Shown in pieces: positions 3,427 through 19,058 of a stretch of 64,000 bases of DNA; within the stretch, counting starts at the first letter, position 1, and the number at the start of each line of letters is the position of its first letter. The notes beneath the pieces are model-generated. The model saw only the letters and a program-made list of their open reading frames with translations, was not told the DNA's origin and made no database searches. Made by a program: the position numbers and the translations under genes. The DNA is taken from IMG/VR virus record IMGVR_UViG_3300020477_000990, positions 1 to 64,000 of that record. One strand, written 5' to 3'.

Positions 3427-3873
3427 ATGACTATGCATTTAGAACGTGGCTTAACCACTCTGAATACAAAGAAGCGAAAGACTAAACCCAAGAAAATTGA
3501 GTATTATATGAAAGGGTTTAAAGAACAAAATAAGTTCTTAAAAAGTAAAGGTTTAGTACAAATGACCATGCAAGAATATATTGATTACAGACGTGGCAAG
3601 TTTAAGTCACCCGTTACTACAAATAGGAGTGTAGTGTCAACGGTTAGCACGTCGGTCTCCAAAACCGAAAGTGAGGGTTCGAATCCTTCCACTTCTGCCA
3701 AACCAGAACCTAAATTGAGTAACAAAATAGGCGGTGGTGCTACAAGAAATTGGCGTGAAGAAAAAGAAAGATTAGAAGTAAGTAGAAAATATTCAATTGT
3801 ACCTGCTTATAATAAAGGACCATATATGGTTGTATCAAAAGACGATTTAAAAACAGCAGGTAGAAAAGTATGA
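3427..3873 (+). CDS. Basic phage protein with C-terminal PAYNKGxY motif; contains tRNA-Trp internally
   Basis: Uninterrupted 148-codon ORF directly after a promoter; its stop overlaps the next ATG. Confidence 0.72.
   Translation: MTMHLERGLTTLNTKKRKTKPKKIEYYMKGFKEQNKFLKSKGLVQMTMQEYIDYRRGKFKSPVTTNRSVVSTVSTSVSKTESEGSNPSTSAKPEPKLSNKIGGGATRNWREEKERLEVSRKYSIVPAYNKGPYMVVSKDDLKTAGRKV
3625..3700 (+). tRNA. tRNA-Trp(CCA), nested in CDS 3427..3873
   Basis: AGGAGTG/CACTTCT acceptor, GTGT/GCAC D-stem, TCGGT-CTCCAAA-ACCGA, GAGGG-TTCGAAT-CCTTC, G73, encoded CCA. Confidence 0.93.
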
Positions 3874-12475: not shown

Positions 12476-13582
12476 ATGAAGATTTGGTTAATAGATTTAG
12501 AATCAGTTGAAACAAGATATACTTGCCAATGGAAGAGCCACGTTCCTACATTATTATTACTACAAGGCTATGAAGTAGAAATAGTTGGTGGTGCAAGAGA
12601 TATACCTCCTGCAACTACACCAGGTGCATTTTTAAACTTTGGTGGAACTAACATTTATAAATCAACGCAAATAGAAAAAGTTGCTAGGGCATTTACTGAA
12701 GGTAGAGTAAGTGCAGGTGATCATTTTATTTTTACTGACGCTTGGCATCCTGGTGTTATACAATTAAAATATATGAGTGAATTATTAGGTATTAAAATTG
12801 TAACACATGGTTTATGGCACGCCGGCAGTTATGATCCAGCAGACTTTTTAGGTAGACTTATTGGTGATGAACCGTGGGTAAGATATGCAGAACAATCTAT
12901 GTTTGAGTGTTTTGATCATAATTATTTTGCAAGTGATTTTCATATTGATATGTTTGGTAAAACTTTTGACAATGCAATGAATCATGTTGGACTTACACCA
13001 CAAGCAAAAAATAAAAAAATTGTACGTACTGGATGGCCAATGGAATATTTAAGTGATACACTTAAACCTTATAATGGAGCAGAAAAAGAAAATATTATTT
13101 TATTTCCACATAGAATTGCACCAGAGAAACAACCTGACATATTTAAAGATTTAGCAACAGCATTACCAGAATATAAATTTATAGTTTGTCAAGAACAACA
13201 ATTATCAAAAGATGAATATCATAAATTATTAGCAAAATCTAAAATGGTGTTTAGTGCTAACTTACAAGAAACATTAGGGATATCACCGTATGAAGGTTTA
13301 CTAGTAGGATCAATGCCACTAGTACCAGATAGATTAAGTTATACAGAAATGTATGATGCAGATTGGAAATATCCGTCAGAGTATACTGAAACATGGGATG
13401 GTTATATAACAAATAAACAAGCATTAGTATCAATTATTAAATCAGATATGGAAAGCTATGTAGATAAACTTCCTAAATTACTTAAATTGGAACAAAATTT
13501 AACTAAAAATTACTTCTCTGCAAATAATCTTTTAAATACTATAAAGGATTATGTAAATGAGGAAGAAAAAGAAAAAGTTTGA
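12476..13582 (+). CDS. GT-B fold glycosyltransferase
   Basis: FPHRIAPEKQP and QETLGISPYEG...PLVPDRLSYTE (GT4-like EX7E). Confidence 0.78.
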   Translation: MKIWLIDLESVETRYTCQWKSHVPTLLLLQGYEVEIVGGARDIPPATTPGAFLNFGGTNIYKSTQIEKVARAFTEGRVSAGDHFIFTDAWHPGVIQLKYMSELLGIKIVTHGLWHAGSYDPADFLGRLIGDEPWVRYAEQSMFECFDHNYFASDFHIDMFGKTFDNAMNHVGLTPQAKNKKIVRTGWPMEYLSDTLKPYNGAEKENIILFPHRIAPEKQPDIFKDLATALPEYKFIVCQEQQLSKDEYHKLLAKSKMVFSANLQETLGISPYEGLLVGSMPLVPDRLSYTEMYDADWKYPSEYTETWDGYITNKQALVSIIKSDMESYVDKLPKLLKLEQNLTKNYFSANNLLNTIKDYVNEEEKEKV

Positions 13583-13859
13583 AGTAGAATTTGATATGGA
13601 AAGTGAAAGTAGGTTACCTGAATATATCTCATGGGAAGAAGAAGAGGTTATGTATGAACTTGCTAAATTTTTTCGTACAAAAATAAAAAATGGCCAATAT
13701 AGAGTAACTATGGCAGAAATAGTAGAAAAGTTTGGACATATTCCTGAACCTCATATGTATAATCAAATATTTGAAATAGCGGAAAGTCTTAATCATCCTG
13801 CATCTGGAATTACCCATAAAGGAAAGTATTATCCTTTAGGAAATTCTACTATACACTAA
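13557..13859 (+). CDS. Hypothetical protein
   Basis: ORF overlapping the GT end. Confidence 0.55.
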   Translation: MRKKKKKFEVEFDMESESRLPEYISWEEEEVMYELAKFFRTKIKNGQYRVTMAEIVEKFGHIPEPHMYNQIFEIAESLNHPASGITHKGKYYPLGNSTIH

Positions 13860-13870
13860 TAAAAAAATAC

Positions 13871-13936
13871 TTGCATTTTAAATCTAAAATTGTTATAATA
13901 AACTTTATAGGCAACCCACTGCCTTAACATCGGGAG
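13871..13936 (+). promoter_or_regulatory. folE promoter plus leader hairpin/pseudoknot candidate
   Basis: TTGCAT-N17-TATAAT with extended -10; AGGCA-ACCCAC-TGCCT then TAACATCGGGAG. Confidence 0.6.
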
Positions 13937-13943
13937 AACATGA

Positions 13944-14618
13944 ATGAGTGTAAGTGAAGATATTAAAAAAAGATTAAAAGAAGCAGGGAAGAGATTTCAT
14001 TGTAATGATAATATATCAGAATATATTAAAGAAGGTGAAATTGCACAAATACAAGAAGAAGTAGAAGAAAAAATGCAAGGAGTTTTGAATAGCCTTGTTA
14101 TTGACACAGCCAACGATCATAACACAAAAGATACAGCAAGGCGTGTAGCTAAAATGTACGTCAACGAAGTTTTTGGTGGTAGGTTTAATCCACCTCCAAG
14201 AGTTACAACTTTTCCAAATATGGGATACAAAAGTTTGTACACTAGTGGGCCAATTTCAATTAAATCAACCTGTGCCCATCATTTTCAAAATATAGTAGGT
14301 AATTGTTGGGTAGGCATTGTACCAAATGGTGAAGTTATTGGTTTGAGTAAGTTTAATCGTATAGTTCATCATATAGCAGAACGTCCACAAATACAAGAAG
14401 AAATGACATCGCAAATTGCAGATGAATTACAGAAGTATGCGAAAACAGAAAATATAGCAGTTGTAGTAAAAGCAGAGCATCATTGCATGACACATAGAGG
14501 TGTTAGGGAACATGAATCTGATATGACCACAGCAATTATGGAAGGCGGTTTTAGAGATAATGAAGCACTTAGACAAGAGTTTTATAATTTAATGCTGAAT
14601 ATGAAGGGTCATGAATAA
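13944..14618 (+). CDS. folE: GTP cyclohydrolase I
   Basis: STCAHHF, IGLSKFNR, RPQIQEE, HHCMTHRGV. Confidence 0.95.
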   Translation: MSVSEDIKKRLKEAGKRFHCNDNISEYIKEGEIAQIQEEVEEKMQGVLNSLVIDTANDHNTKDTARRVAKMYVNEVFGGRFNPPPRVTTFPNMGYKSLYTSGPISIKSTCAHHFQNIVGNCWVGIVPNGEVIGLSKFNRIVHHIAERPQIQEEMTSQIADELQKYAKTENIAVVVKAEHHCMTHRGVREHESDMTTAIMEGGFRDNEALRQEFYNLMLNMKGHE

Positions 14619-14883
14619 ATCGAAATATGTTGCAGAACACAAATTGTTTACATTTCAACCAGCCGAAGATTCTGATTATATTGTTTGGGAAGAAATGGAA
14701 ATTGGTAAAAGAGTAACAAAGTATACTGATTGGTTTAAAAGTAATTCAGTAAATCCAAAAAAATATAATTTTAAAAAATATATAAATGAAGGCAATGGAT
14801 TTGAAAGTATTGTTGAAGGTCATGTTACAGTTCAAATCTTTGATAAAAAAATTGATACACTATTTAGGTTAACTTGGTTATGA
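14611..14883 (+). CDS. Hypothetical protein
   Basis: Overlaps the folE stop. Confidence 0.55.
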   Translation: MNKSKYVAEHKLFTFQPAEDSDYIVWEEMEIGKRVTKYTDWFKSNSVNPKKYNFKKYINEGNGFESIVEGHVTVQIFDKKIDTLFRLTWL

Positions 14884-15167
14884 TGCAAAAAGTAAAAAAG
14901 TTGTTTATAGAATCTTATCAAGAAAGCCCATTTTCGTTTTGGTGTGAAACAATTGAAACTATATTATTAGTTGGTGCAAGTGCTGTTTTAACTTTTACTA
15001 TATTAGAACCAGCTACTTGGATATTTGTTCCAATGTATTTGGTTGGGTCAGCATTAGGAATAATTAGTTCAGTTATACGTAAAGCGGCTATGGTAATTTT
15101 TTTATGTAGTTGGTTTACACTTATGAATTTAATTGCTTTAATAGTTTTAATTATGGATGTAATATGA
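14880..15167 (+). CDS. Small 3-TM membrane protein
   Basis: Hydrophobic segments. Confidence 0.65.
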   Translation: MMQKVKKLFIESYQESPFSFWCETIETILLVGASAVLTFTILEPATWIFVPMYLVGSALGIISSVIRKAAMVIFLCSWFTLMNLIALIVLIMDVI

Positions 15168-15682
15168 AGGTAGGAATAACATTCTCAACATTTGATTTAT
15201 TTCATTCTGGTCATGTGTTAATGTTAAAAGAAGCAAAAGAAAGTTGTGATCATTTAATTGCGGCTATACAAACAGACCCAACTATTGATAGACCTGGAAC
15301 AAAAAATAAGCCAGTACAGTCTATTGTTGAAAGGCAAATACAAGTTAACGGTTGCAAATACGTTGATTCTATAGTAGTATATGAGAGTGAAAAGGATGTC
15401 GAAGACATTTTAAAAAGTACTAAAATTGATGTTAGGATTTTAGGAATTGAGTATAAGGATAAAGAATTTACAGGCAAAAGTATTTGCAAAGAAAAAGGAA
15501 TAGAATTAGTGTTTAATAGTAGAGATCATGATTGGAGTACTACAGAATTACGTAACAGGATAGGAAATGTTATGCCAAAAAAGTCTGAATCGTCTAGTCC
15601 TGGAAAGACATTTGATGAAAAAATGGATGAAGAATTTAAAGATTTAAGTTTTTTAAAATACAAATATAAAGGGAATGTATGA
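15164..15682 (+). CDS. Cytidylyltransferase (TagD-like, HxGH)
   Basis: FSTFDLFHSGH...WSTTELR. Confidence 0.88.
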   Translation: MKVGITFSTFDLFHSGHVLMLKEAKESCDHLIAAIQTDPTIDRPGTKNKPVQSIVERQIQVNGCKYVDSIVVYESEKDVEDILKSTKIDVRILGIEYKDKEFTGKSICKEKGIELVFNSRDHDWSTTELRNRIGNVMPKKSESSSPGKTFDEKMDEEFKDLSFLKYKYKGNV

Positions 15683-16632
15683 TGTACGCAGAAGAGTTAG
15701 TTAACAATTCAATTGGAAGGCAGTATTGGATTTATAAAGATGATGCTTTTTATCAACAAAGAATTGCAAATGCTGGTCCTTATCAAAAACAAAATTTATT
15801 AAGATTGCGAGAATTAAAACCAAATGCAAGAACTATATTAGACGTAGGTATGAATATTGGTATGAATACAATTGAATATGCCACGTGGGCTAAAAAAGTT
15901 CATGGGTTTGAACCAACTAAACAAACATATAATATGGCATTAAAAAATATAATATTGGCTAAAAAACAATTAAATGAAAATATGATTAAGCCATGGTATT
16001 TAAATGGTACTACAAATTTTAATGGAAAGTTTGGAGGATCTTTAGAAATGATAGGTGAAGTTAGTACATATAATCATGGGTTAGGTGATAAGCCAGGACA
16101 ATTTGAAATATTAATTAAAAAAGATAATGCTGGGCACAATCATATAGAAAATATTAATGTGCCGTTAGCTAATGGAAGAAAACGAAGAAGAACAGTTCAA
16201 CCAGAAAAAGAAATTGTAGAAGTTAAAACTTTAGATTCATATAATTTTGAAGATGTTGATATTATTAAAATTGATACAGAAGGTTATGAGTTTCCAGTAG
16301 TAATGGGTGCAGAGCAAACAATTGTTTCACAACGTCCTATTGTACAATTAGAAATGGTTGATGGGCAACCTGAACGTTTTGGATTTAGTTGTCAACAAAT
16401 ATATGATTGGTTTTTATCAAGAGATTTTGTAATTACATTATCTGATGGTACAGATGTTGGTACTAAATGGGAACATTACACTAAAAAAATGGAAAGATTC
16501 TTTATACATAAAAGTTTATTAAATGACGAATATCTTAAAGAAGTTGCAGTTAAAAGAACTAAAACAATACCTAGTAGTGAAGAAAAAAAATTAAAAGAAC
16601 AAATTGAACCAATAATGTTGGCACCGATATGA
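15679..16632 (+). CDS. FkbM-family methyltransferase
   Basis: LDVGMNIG, GFEP, IKIDTEGYE. Confidence 0.87.
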   Translation: MMYAEELVNNSIGRQYWIYKDDAFYQQRIANAGPYQKQNLLRLRELKPNARTILDVGMNIGMNTIEYATWAKKVHGFEPTKQTYNMALKNIILAKKQLNENMIKPWYLNGTTNFNGKFGGSLEMIGEVSTYNHGLGDKPGQFEILIKKDNAGHNHIENINVPLANGRKRRRTVQPEKEIVEVKTLDSYNFEDVDIIKIDTEGYEFPVVMGAEQTIVSQRPIVQLEMVDGQPERFGFSCQQIYDWFLSRDFVITLSDGTDVGTKWEHYTKKMERFFIHKSLLNDEYLKEVAVKRTKTIPSSEEKKLKEQIEPIMLAPI

Positions 16633-17111
16633 AAAAAGAATATTACAATTGGGAAAATATAGAAGATATGATATCTGATGTTGTACAGCAAATTGCTGTA
16701 GATGGAGATAACTTTAAACCAGATTACGTAGTAGGATTAACACGTGGAGGTTTAATACCAGCAACAATGTTAAGTCATTATTATCAAGTGCCAATGCATA
16801 CACTAGAAATTAAATTGCGTGACCATGCAGTTACGCCAGAATCAAATAAATGGATGGCGAAAGATGCAGTTGATGGAAAAAATATTTTAATTGTAGATGA
16901 TATTAATGATACAGGTGATACACTTGCTTGGATTAAACAAGATTGGGGAAAGTCAGGTGAAATAAATTGGCCTGCTAATATTAGATTTGCAGTTTTAGTT
17001 GAAAATGAGCCAAGTAAGTTTGGTGATGTTGATTATGTTTCAAAATTTATTAACAAAAACGAAAATCCTCAATGGATAGTATTTCCATGGGAAGAATGGT
17101 GGGCAATATGA
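16629..17111 (+). CDS. Purine phosphoribosyltransferase (Gpt-like)
   Basis: GLTRGGLIPA, LIVDDINDTGDT, WIVFPWE. Confidence 0.9.
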   Translation: MKKEYYNWENIEDMISDVVQQIAVDGDNFKPDYVVGLTRGGLIPATMLSHYYQVPMHTLEIKLRDHAVTPESNKWMAKDAVDGKNILIVDDINDTGDTLAWIKQDWGKSGEINWPANIRFAVLVENEPSKFGDVDYVSKFINKNENPQWIVFPWEEWWAI

Positions 17112-17551
17112 ATAAATGGAAAGATGAACCATATCCGTGGCACAATGAACCGGTAAACAGATATCCAGATGAATTTAAAGATAGTGTCTGGGCAAGTGGA
17201 GATAGAAAACCAGTTCATGATGAACCATGCTTTGCAGTATATGAAGATAAGTATCCGGTTAAAAAAGGACACTTGTTATATATTCCAAAAACTAAAGATG
17301 CTCCAGGAATGATTGGGTTATGTTTTCAAGAAGCATATCGAAAAGGAATGGAAATGGTCAATGAAGGAAAAATTACAGGATTTAATTTAGGTATGAACTT
17401 TGGAGAGTCAGCAGGTCAAAGTATTTTTTGGCCTCATGTACATTTTATACCAAGAACAGATGGAGATCAAACAGGTCGACCTAAAGGTGTAAGACGTGCA
17501 TATCCAGATGATCCTTATCAACCTGAAAATATGAAAAAGGAAGTGAAGTAA
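17108..17551 (+). CDS. HIT-family nucleotide hydrolase
   Basis: DKYPVKKGHLL...AGQS...PHVHFIPR. Confidence 0.85.
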   Translation: MNKWKDEPYPWHNEPVNRYPDEFKDSVWASGDRKPVHDEPCFAVYEDKYPVKKGHLLYIPKTKDAPGMIGLCFQEAYRKGMEMVNEGKITGFNLGMNFGESAGQSIFWPHVHFIPRTDGDQTGRPKGVRRAYPDDPYQPENMKKEVK

Positions 17552-17552
17552 T

Positions 17553-18083
17553 ATGAACGTAGTAAATGAAATGTACAGAGATAAAGTACCACAAGTAACA
17601 TTTAAAGTTAGAGAAATGTTAACACCAGGTAAGTATGGTTGGAAAGATAAAACAACTGATGATTTTTTTAAAAATAAAACAGTTGTGCTATTTTCGTTAC
17701 CAGGTGCATTTACACCAACTTGTTCGTCTACTCATTTACCTGGATATGAAGAAAAGTATAAAGAACTTAAAAAATATGCTGATGACGTATATTGTATTAG
17801 TGTAAATGATTCATTTGTTATGAACAGTTGGGCAAAAGAGTTAGATTGTCAAAATGTAAAAATGATTCCAGATGGAAATGGCCATTTTACAAAAAAAATG
17901 GGTATGTTAGTTAATAAAGAACATTTAGGATTTGGCCAAAGAAGTTGGAGATATTCAGCATTAGTTAAAAACGGTGCTATAATGAAAATGTTTGTAGAAC
18001 CTGGAAAAAATGATAAAGGCGAAGATTTTGATCCTCTTGAAGTATCAGATGTAGACACAATGTTGGCCTATCTAAAAGGTTGA
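17553..18083 (+). CDS. Peroxiredoxin (Prx5 type)
   Basis: LPGAFTPTCSSTHLPG, SVND, RSWRY. Confidence 0.93.
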   Translation: MNVVNEMYRDKVPQVTFKVREMLTPGKYGWKDKTTDDFFKNKTVVLFSLPGAFTPTCSSTHLPGYEEKYKELKKYADDVYCISVNDSFVMNSWAKELDCQNVKMIPDGNGHFTKKMGMLVNKEHLGFGQRSWRYSALVKNGAIMKMFVEPGKNDKGEDFDPLEVSDVDTMLAYLKG

Positions 18084-18107
18084 CATATTGCCTAAATACT
18101 ATATAAT
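18080..18107 (+). promoter_or_regulatory. Sigma70-type early promoter
   Basis: TTGACA-N16-TATAAT. Confidence 0.7.
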
Positions 18108-18131
18108 ATGTAGTATAATGGATAATATAGT

Positions 18132-19058
18132 ATGACATTAGCACAGCATGAGTTTGGTAAAACTGTAGAAAAGAAGTTTTATTATTCAGAAATATTTCAC
18201 AGTATTCAAGGTGAAGGACATTATACAGGTGTTCCTACTGCTTGGATAAGATTCTTTTTATGTAATTTACAATGCAATGGATTTGGACAAAAAGATCCAA
18301 CAAATCCAGATACATATGAATTACCATTTGAAGACTTTGATGTATCAAGTGTAGATAAAGTAGAAGATCTTCCAGTATGGGATAAAGGTTGTGATTCGTC
18401 ATATACTTGGGCAAAAAAATTTAAACAATTAATGGGGTATGAAACTCCTACAGTATTAGCAAATAAAATTGTAGATATAATGAAAAATGAAAGTAATCCA
18501 GATGGATTATTTTTACATCCTGTTACAGGACAAAGACAACATTTATGTTTTACAGGTGGTGAACCATTAATGGTATTGGCACAAACAGCGATTGTGGGAA
18601 TTTATCAAGAATTACAAAAGCAAAATAATTTGCCAGGATCAATGACATTTGAAACTAATGGAACACAGAAATTAAGACCACAGTTTATAGATTGGGTAAA
18701 CTCAATTGATACAGAAGTGTTTTTTAGTTGTAGTCCAAAATTATTTACAGTATCAGGTGAAAAGTCTATGAAAGCAATTAAACCTGAAATAGTTGCAGAG
18801 TATAGAAAACTTTCTGATAAAGGACAATTAAAGTTTGTTGTAGGTTCTGAAGATAGAGAATGGGAAGAAATGGAATCAGTAATTAAACAATTTAAAGAAG
18901 CAGGTGTTGACTGGCCTATATGGGTTATGCCAACAGGTGCTAGAGAAGAAGAGCAAATAGAAGGTGCTGGTAAAGTAGCAGAAAAGGCTTTTAAACGAGG
19001 TTATAATGTTGCGGCAAGAGTTCACGTATATTTGTTTGGAAATGCAATAGGTACATAA
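18132..19058 (+). CDS. queE: 7-carboxy-7-deazaguanine synthase (radical SAM)
   Basis: EIFHSIQGEG, RFFLCNLQC...CDS, TGGEP, ETNGT, SPK, RVH. Confidence 0.88.
   Translation: MTLAQHEFGKTVEKKFYYSEIFHSIQGEGHYTGVPTAWIRFFLCNLQCNGFGQKDPTNPDTYELPFEDFDVSSVDKVEDLPVWDKGCDSSYTWAKKFKQLMGYETPTVLANKIVDIMKNESNPDGLFLHPVTGQRQHLCFTGGEPLMVLAQTAIVGIYQELQKQNNLPGSMTFETNGTQKLRPQFIDWVNSIDTEVFFSCSPKLFTVSGEKSMKAIKPEIVAEYRKLSDKGQLKFVVGSEDREWEEMESVIKQFKEAGVDWPIWVMPTGAREEEQIEGAGKVAEKAFKRGYNVAARVHVYLFGNAIGT

Follow-up and report, generated by a model that had tools for sequence, protein, structure and literature searches.

A predicted mini-pseudoknot RNA in the folE leader of uncultured phages

Overview

We found that the roughly 30-nt leader of the GTP cyclohydrolase I gene (folE) of a jumbo phage is one copy of a widespread, structurally conserved pseudoknot RNA that covers the ribosome-binding site and that, as far as searched, is restricted to phages. 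It looks like a new and unusually small riboswitch, although ligand binding is inferred from sequence comparison alone. The DNA analysed here, referred to as the window, is the first 64 kb (64,000 nucleotides) of IMG/VR record IMGVR_UViG_3300020477_000990, a 328,149-bp phage genome with direct terminal repeats, estimated complete, with 31.8% GC. It encodes T4-like replication and chaperone proteins, namely a gp44-like clamp loader and Cpn10.

The folE leader and its promoter

The original prediction described, at 13906-13946, a miniature H-type pseudoknot candidate in which the CCC of a hairpin loop can pair with the GGG of the Shine-Dalgarno (SD) sequence. This observation was confirmed, as every element reads exactly as described (Table 1). 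The leader lies just downstream of an extended -10 promoter element, which predicts a transcription start near 13906-13907, about 7 nt after the -10 and 2-4 nt before the hairpin; this start is inferred from the promoter sequence alone, and the predicted 5' boundary of 13906 fits it. An out-of-frame AUG at 13940 is only 3 nt from the SD. The -35-like hexamer was not listed by the promoter scan, since it matches only 3/6 of TTGACA, but related loci carry TTGACA..CCTAAATA..TATAAT at the same place. This promoter-like consensus, TTGACA-N4-5-CCTAAATA-N3-5-TATAAT, recurs upstream of folE and queE-like genes in many of these phages (for example in loci L070, L075, L078 and L052, L numbers designating the sequence loci retrieved here, and at 18080-18107 of the window), and is possibly their early-promoter signature.

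Table 1. Features of the folE leader and of its genomic surroundings (window coordinates)
Feature	Coordinates	Strand	Description
-35-like hexamer	13871-13876	+	TTGCAT; 17 nt before the -10
Extended -10	13891-13899	+	TGTTATAAT
P1 5' strand	13909-13913	+	AGGCA, conserved core GGCA 13910-13913; pairs with 13920-13924; core pairs in 51 distinct leaders AU/GC/UA/CG, GC (50) and CG (1), AU/CG/UA/GC, CG/AU/GC
Loop	13914-13919	+	ACCCAC: A13914 (L1), C13915-C13917 (P2 5' strand, can pair with G13934-G13932), A13918, C13919 (L2)
P1 3' strand	13920-13924	+	UGCCU (core UGCC 13920-13923, then U13924)
L3 tail	13925-13931	+	UAACAUC, read as U-AAC-A-UC; extra A at 13929
Shine-Dalgarno	13932-13936	+	GGGAG; G13932-G13934 form the P2 3' strand
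folE	13944-14618	+	GTP cyclohydrolase I; PF01227 E 3e-47, NCBIfam FolE E 1.6e-51; ATG 7 nt after the SD
Purine-type phosphoribosyltransferase (PRTase)	16629-17111	+	PF00156; nearest NCBIfam models xanthine and hypoxanthine-guanine PRTases, below cut-off
QueE-like radical SAM gene	18132-19058	+	own promoter, no motif; E 2.7e-44 to the family that follows folE in motif loci; only QueE models hit in NCBIfam, all below cut-off
Gene run	12476-19058		GT1-like glycosyltransferase, folE, two small ORFs, nucleotidyltransferase (RfaE domain II-like), FkbM methyltransferase, purine-type PRTase, HIT protein, redoxin, QueE-like
tRNA genes	1-76, 1346-1420, 3625-3700		Ala-TGC, Gly-GCC, Trp-CCA, at the start of the record

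Taken alone, the structure of this single sequence was not above chance: the minimum free energy was -6 kcal/mol (hairpin only; z = 0.13), and 104 of 200 shuffled sequences folded as well. It becomes significant only by comparison, on the basis of which chance complementarity without function is refuted by the covariation and gene linkage described below.

Comparative evidence for the structure

Among FolE relatives on viral contigs (80 loci at 71-88% identity), a subset showed the same leader with different stem sequences. A covariance model built from 20 distinct leaders, with P1 only, hit 27 of these 80 loci, each with one hit, always ending a few nucleotides before folE. In the 328-kb genome the model hit once, the next best place scoring E 0.7. 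Two further FolE-seeded sets, from clades only about 38% identical to the FolE of the window, carried the motif in 73/80 and 64/80 loci, the three FolE clades being only 35-45% identical to each other. Loci without the motif have short plain leaders, a deleted hairpin or a different promoter type, and these include some close relatives, so that the element is dispensable. FolE relatives without the motif (L004-L011, L015, L016, L019, L021 and L025 among others) share, about 50 nt upstream of folE, a different conserved block, ..CTGCTGTACAATGGTATAA.., which resembles a T4-type middle-promoter layout in our reading.

P1 and P2 covariation was seen in a first set of 20 leaders, and an alignment of 51 distinct leaders from the FolE-seeded sets revealed that (i) 99.4% of cells are paired, against 75% in shuffles, (ii) all four core P1 pairs (99% paired) change on both sides, even the near-invariant G:C becoming C:G once, (iii) all three loop:SD pairs (YCC with GGR) are always paired, with one of the three varying on both sides, U:A in 48 leaders and C:G in 3, and (iv) the covariation score is 0.579 against 0.112, reached by 0 of 500 shuffles, while every slid register collapses to 28-50% paired. 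The absence of conserved or compensated pairing, named beforehand as part of the outcome that would refute the candidate, was thus not observed. It should be noted that P2 has only three pairs, two of them invariant because they are also the SD, so that support for the pseudoknot rests on a single covarying pair plus a few register-shifted variants. In these rare variants (the L624 type and L581) three pairs are kept, with loop AUACCUC and UAGGAA, and UCUCGC and UAGGAG. A DNA-level operator (palindrome) was rejected, since the stem covaries freely and occasional G:U pairs work only on the sense RNA strand.

Ten unpaired positions are invariant or nearly so, although the proteins have diverged to 35% identity. 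These include the A after the P1 5' strand (A in 50/51, G in 1), the C before the P1 3' strand (51/51; alignment column 15), and, in the tail (columns 30-35), AAC (51, 50 and 51), then U (51) and C (50) before GG. The fifth loop position is never G. Such conservation is typical of a binding pocket and is not expected of a plain hairpin.

As an independent test of the pseudoknot pair, we ran motif-first scans of viral contigs with four combinations of loop and SD; except for the second, which was complete, these scans were partial and the counts are lower bounds. We found that (i) for UCC with GGAG, of 80 matches examined, 59 had 4/4 stem pairs (about 2% expected by chance) and 62 were followed within 5-10 nt by a FolE only 35-77% identical to that of the window (counted as at least 59 folE leaders), (ii) for CCC with GGGAG, 12 of 72 matches were followed by folE, (iii) for CCC with GGAG, 1 of 79, and (iv) for UCC with GGGAG, 0 of 80. 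On a FolE tree of 168 proteins the CCC/GGG state arose at least three times. L139 and L161 (GC-rich, inside a coding region) and the other pattern matches with 2 or fewer stem pairs were regarded as chance hits. In L148 (1892-2281, minus strand) and L140 (548-934, plus strand), the motif precedes a 129-aa ORF with no Pfam or PHROG match, which may be a further pathway protein; in L148 folE follows directly, so that in this locus the link to folE holds as an operon.

A second coupling links the closing pair of P1 to tail length. Leaders whose P1 closes with A:U always have one extra A after AAC (17/17), and those closing with C:G or G:C never do (0/41). On the FolE tree the two traits change together in 13 of 13 independent pairs (p 0.00024). 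This suggests that the tail touches the top of P1, a tertiary contact, although the linkage of two leader alleles moved by recombination could account for it as well.

These data bear on a ligand-independent leader, in which a constitutive anti-SD loop would tune folE translation down or make it temperature-dependent, and a 5' hairpin would protect the mRNA from decay. In its favour, the loop UCC is simply an anti-SD mimic, the hairpin sits at the predicted 5' end, and the element can be lost without losing folE. However, this view does not explain the invariant A8, C15, AAC, U and C, the ban on G at loop position 5 or the coupling of closing pair and tail length, nor why only folE, out of several hundred genes in a 328-kb genome, has the element. 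We consider it unlikely.

Distribution

A 25-nt IUPAC pattern scanned over one genome for each of 185,579 prokaryote species gave 10 matches, of which two are real. Both lie on 4-5.5-kb contigs of Crocinitomicaceae-type metagenome-assembled genomes (MAGs) and have the phage-type promoter and folE; one of these MAGs holds a second such contig. The short contigs of this kind (L217, L218 and L703), in Crocinitomicaceae and Lishizhenia MAGs, are probably phage contigs binned into the MAGs, or a hint at the host. No hit was found in 150 further genomes of the order of the MAG that holds L217. The 50,697 GenBank phage records gave no credible hit, short-query BLAST returning only partial hits at E>=2, and the six cultured phages with the closest FolE had no covariance-model hit upstream of folE with filters off. 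Among cultured phages, the 469-kb Sinorhizobium phage Phosso (L709, 1332-6606) keeps the order glycosyltransferase, folE, queE-like, but its 97-nt folE leader has a different hairpin and no match to the model. As far as searched, the family belongs to uncultured aquatic phages.

Comparison with described RNAs

Rfam 15 gave nothing at gathering score in the window, and nothing relevant at E<=10 in short searches (71-251 nt) of three family members, preQ1-I, -II and -III (RF00522, RF01054 and RF02680) and THF-II included. A hit to BSnc150, a Brucella sRNA (E 0.25, 19.5 bits against a gathering score of 73), lies mostly over the SD-to-start stretch, is absent from other family members and was treated as chance. 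Full-text literature searches found no description of the motif; a survey of pelagimyophages reported that a riboswitch scanner found none in such phages (PMC7029224).

The closest system is the preQ1-I riboswitch, especially the translational Thermoanaerobacter type, likewise a tiny H-type pseudoknot in a 5' leader that controls genes of the GTP-derived 7-deazaguanine route. The order of elements is the same, P1, a short L1, P2 made from hairpin-loop bases and the first SD bases, an L2 ending in a conserved C immediately 5' of the P1 3' strand (the ligand-reading position in preQ1-I), and a tail beginning UUAAC/AUAAC. The present motif differs in that it is about 28 nt against 34, its loop is 6 nt against 10-12, L1 is an A and not the U of preQ1-I, and L3 is WW-AAC-(A)-UC rather than the run of A that supplies the ligand-contacting A; it was found on phage contigs only and on folE, not on queCDEF or queT. 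We therefore do not assign it to preQ1-I. That it could nevertheless be a divergent preQ1-I type, binding preQ1 or preQ0 as the described members do, is supported by the shared layout and by the QueE-like and QueD-like genes, but is doubtful in view of the missing covariance-model match, of these differences, and of the absence from the phages of QueC above cut-off and of TGT or DpdA hits (QueF having been left out of this search), which makes preQ1 unlikely to be their product.

The THF-II riboswitch ("folE motif") of Rhizobiales also sits directly upstream of folE, with the ribosome-binding site (RBS) in a helix and translational OFF control, but is a 50-60-nt hairpin with an internal loop (P1-J12-P2-J21) whose RBS is in the right arm of P1 (PMC6800512, PMC9881143), whereas here the SD pairs with the loop of an upstream hairpin. 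The motif is therefore not THF-II. In the single-stranded J12 (UCAAC) of THF-II, A20 and A21 make A-minor contacts in the P1 minor groove and C22 plus a U read the pterin (PMC9881143); an invariant AAC also follows P1 here, and at the level of sequence this tail recalls J12. Other riboswitches in which the ligand stabilises a pseudoknot that includes or abuts the SD (preQ1-II, SAM-II/SAM-V, guanidine-III) are larger (40-80 nt), have different conserved cores and are linked to different genes, and none matched. The T4 gene 32 leader pseudoknot, also a small H-type pseudoknot, in the leader of an early or middle gene and used for translational feedback, is bound by the gene's own protein, lies further from the SD and has an unrelated sequence.

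The latter example raises the possibility of a protein operator, in which the pseudoknot would be bound by FolE itself (autoregulation) or by a phage or host RNA-binding protein, as with T4 gene 32 or the gp43 and RegA operators, and no small molecule would be bound by the RNA. The link of the motif to folE alone fits autoregulation equally well, these are T4-like phages, a group with leader operators, and invariant unpaired bases suit protein recognition too. On the other hand, FolE has diverged to 35-45% identity between clades while the unpaired bases of the RNA stay identical, FolE is not known to bind RNA, and the layout, with a C next to P1, an AAC tail and a junction between two stacked helices, mirrors small-molecule aptamers. 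A protein operator is not excluded, but we regard it as the less likely reading.

Pathway context

The protein family most often found after folE in motif loci (38 of 77) is "QueE-like radical SAM" (phrog_2076, E 7e-50), of which the window has a copy (Table 1). A PRTase lies within 3 kb of folE in 54 of 73 related loci. A QueD-like PTPS is encoded at 269701-270153 of the whole record; its promoter is bracketed by an 11-nt inverted repeat, ATGCGTTGTTT...AAACAACGCAT (269575-269640; L085 1300-1365), which looks like an operator or a leader hairpin. A loose pattern hit at 269353, upstream of a small ORF near the PTPS gene, has no stem and no covariance-model score, and the PTPS leaders of four phages share no such motif. 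The small radical SAM proteins next to PTPS are not QueE by NCBIfam. The genome encodes 22 radical-SAM domain ORFs (for example 68864-69358, 74558-78557, 85272-85784 and 291222-296015) and four related records hold 11-25 each, an unusually large complement for a virus. A full-length ClpX homologue (NCBIfam E 5e-178) is also encoded (273525-274797; L694 5526-6797).

A classic DpdA-type DNA modification set was not supported, as there was no TGT or DpdA hit and QueC-like hits were only below cut-off, and neither was a folate set in this genome, in which no FolP and no DHFR were found. FolE, QueD, QueE and PRTase without QueC resemble tubercidin-type 7-deazapurine nucleoside pathways, and the gene run of the window, with the distant QueD-like PTPS and with no QueC above cut-off and no DpdA, may represent a nucleotide-level 7-deazapurine pathway. 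This is a lead rather than a result.

Proposed mechanism and significance

Overall, we favour, with moderate confidence, a translational OFF riboswitch of preQ1-I-like topology. In this view, the mRNA starts a few nucleotides before a 4-5 bp hairpin (P1), three loop nucleotides (YCC) pair with the first three nucleotides of the SD (GGR), giving an H-type pseudoknot of about 28 nt, and the layout is P1, a one-nucleotide L1 (A), a three-pair P2, a two-nucleotide L2 ending in C and a 7-8-nt L3, the AAC-(A)-UC tail running along P1 and an invariant A and C flanking the junction of the two helices. In preQ1-I the ligand stacks between the helices and pairs with the corresponding C. We propose that a small molecule would likewise stack between P1 and P2 and pair with the invariant C next to the P1 3' strand, locking the 3-bp P2, which should be unstable alone, hiding the ribosome-binding site and switching off FolE synthesis, as end-product feedback on the first step of the pathway. 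Because the start codon follows the SD by 5-10 nt and the promoter lies just upstream, there is no room for a terminator and control must be translational. The most likely ligand class would be a 2-amino-4-oxo heterocycle made from GTP, either a 7-deazaguanine intermediate (CDG, preQ0 or preQ1 type) or a reduced pterin. The conservation, both helices, the overlap with the SD, the exclusive link to folE and the restriction to phages are established by the comparisons reported here, whereas ligand binding, the identity of the ligand and the OFF logic are inferred. Against this view, an aptamer of about 28 nt would be smaller than any known natural one.

The interpretation given in the original prediction was therefore partly supported. 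Its structural half held, as did its remark that the loop does not fit the preQ1-I consensus, while its functional half, feedback control of the first pathway step by a guanine, pterin or deazaguanine ligand, remains an inference made more plausible by the QueE-like, QueD-like and PRTase genes in the same phages. A more speculative possibility, which we consider rather unlikely, is that this is the smallest natural riboswitch class yet (about 28 nt from P1 to P2), confined to phages, sensing a 7-deazapurine intermediate such as CDG or preQ0 and throttling the first enzyme of a phage FolE-QueD-QueE-PRTase pathway, which lacks QueC and DpdA and so may make 7-deazapurine nucleotides at the nucleotide-pool level.

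Riboswitches carried by phages are few, and those described are copies of bacterial classes. Here, a conserved, covarying leader RNA occurs in hundreds of uncultured phage contigs and guards the entry enzyme of the GTP-to-pterin/7-deazaguanine route. If it is a protein operator, it is still a new, abundant phage translational control element. If it binds a metabolite, it would set a new lower size limit for natural aptamers, would show that phages evolve their own metabolite sensors, and would give a handle on what these folE/queE/PRTase gene sets make.
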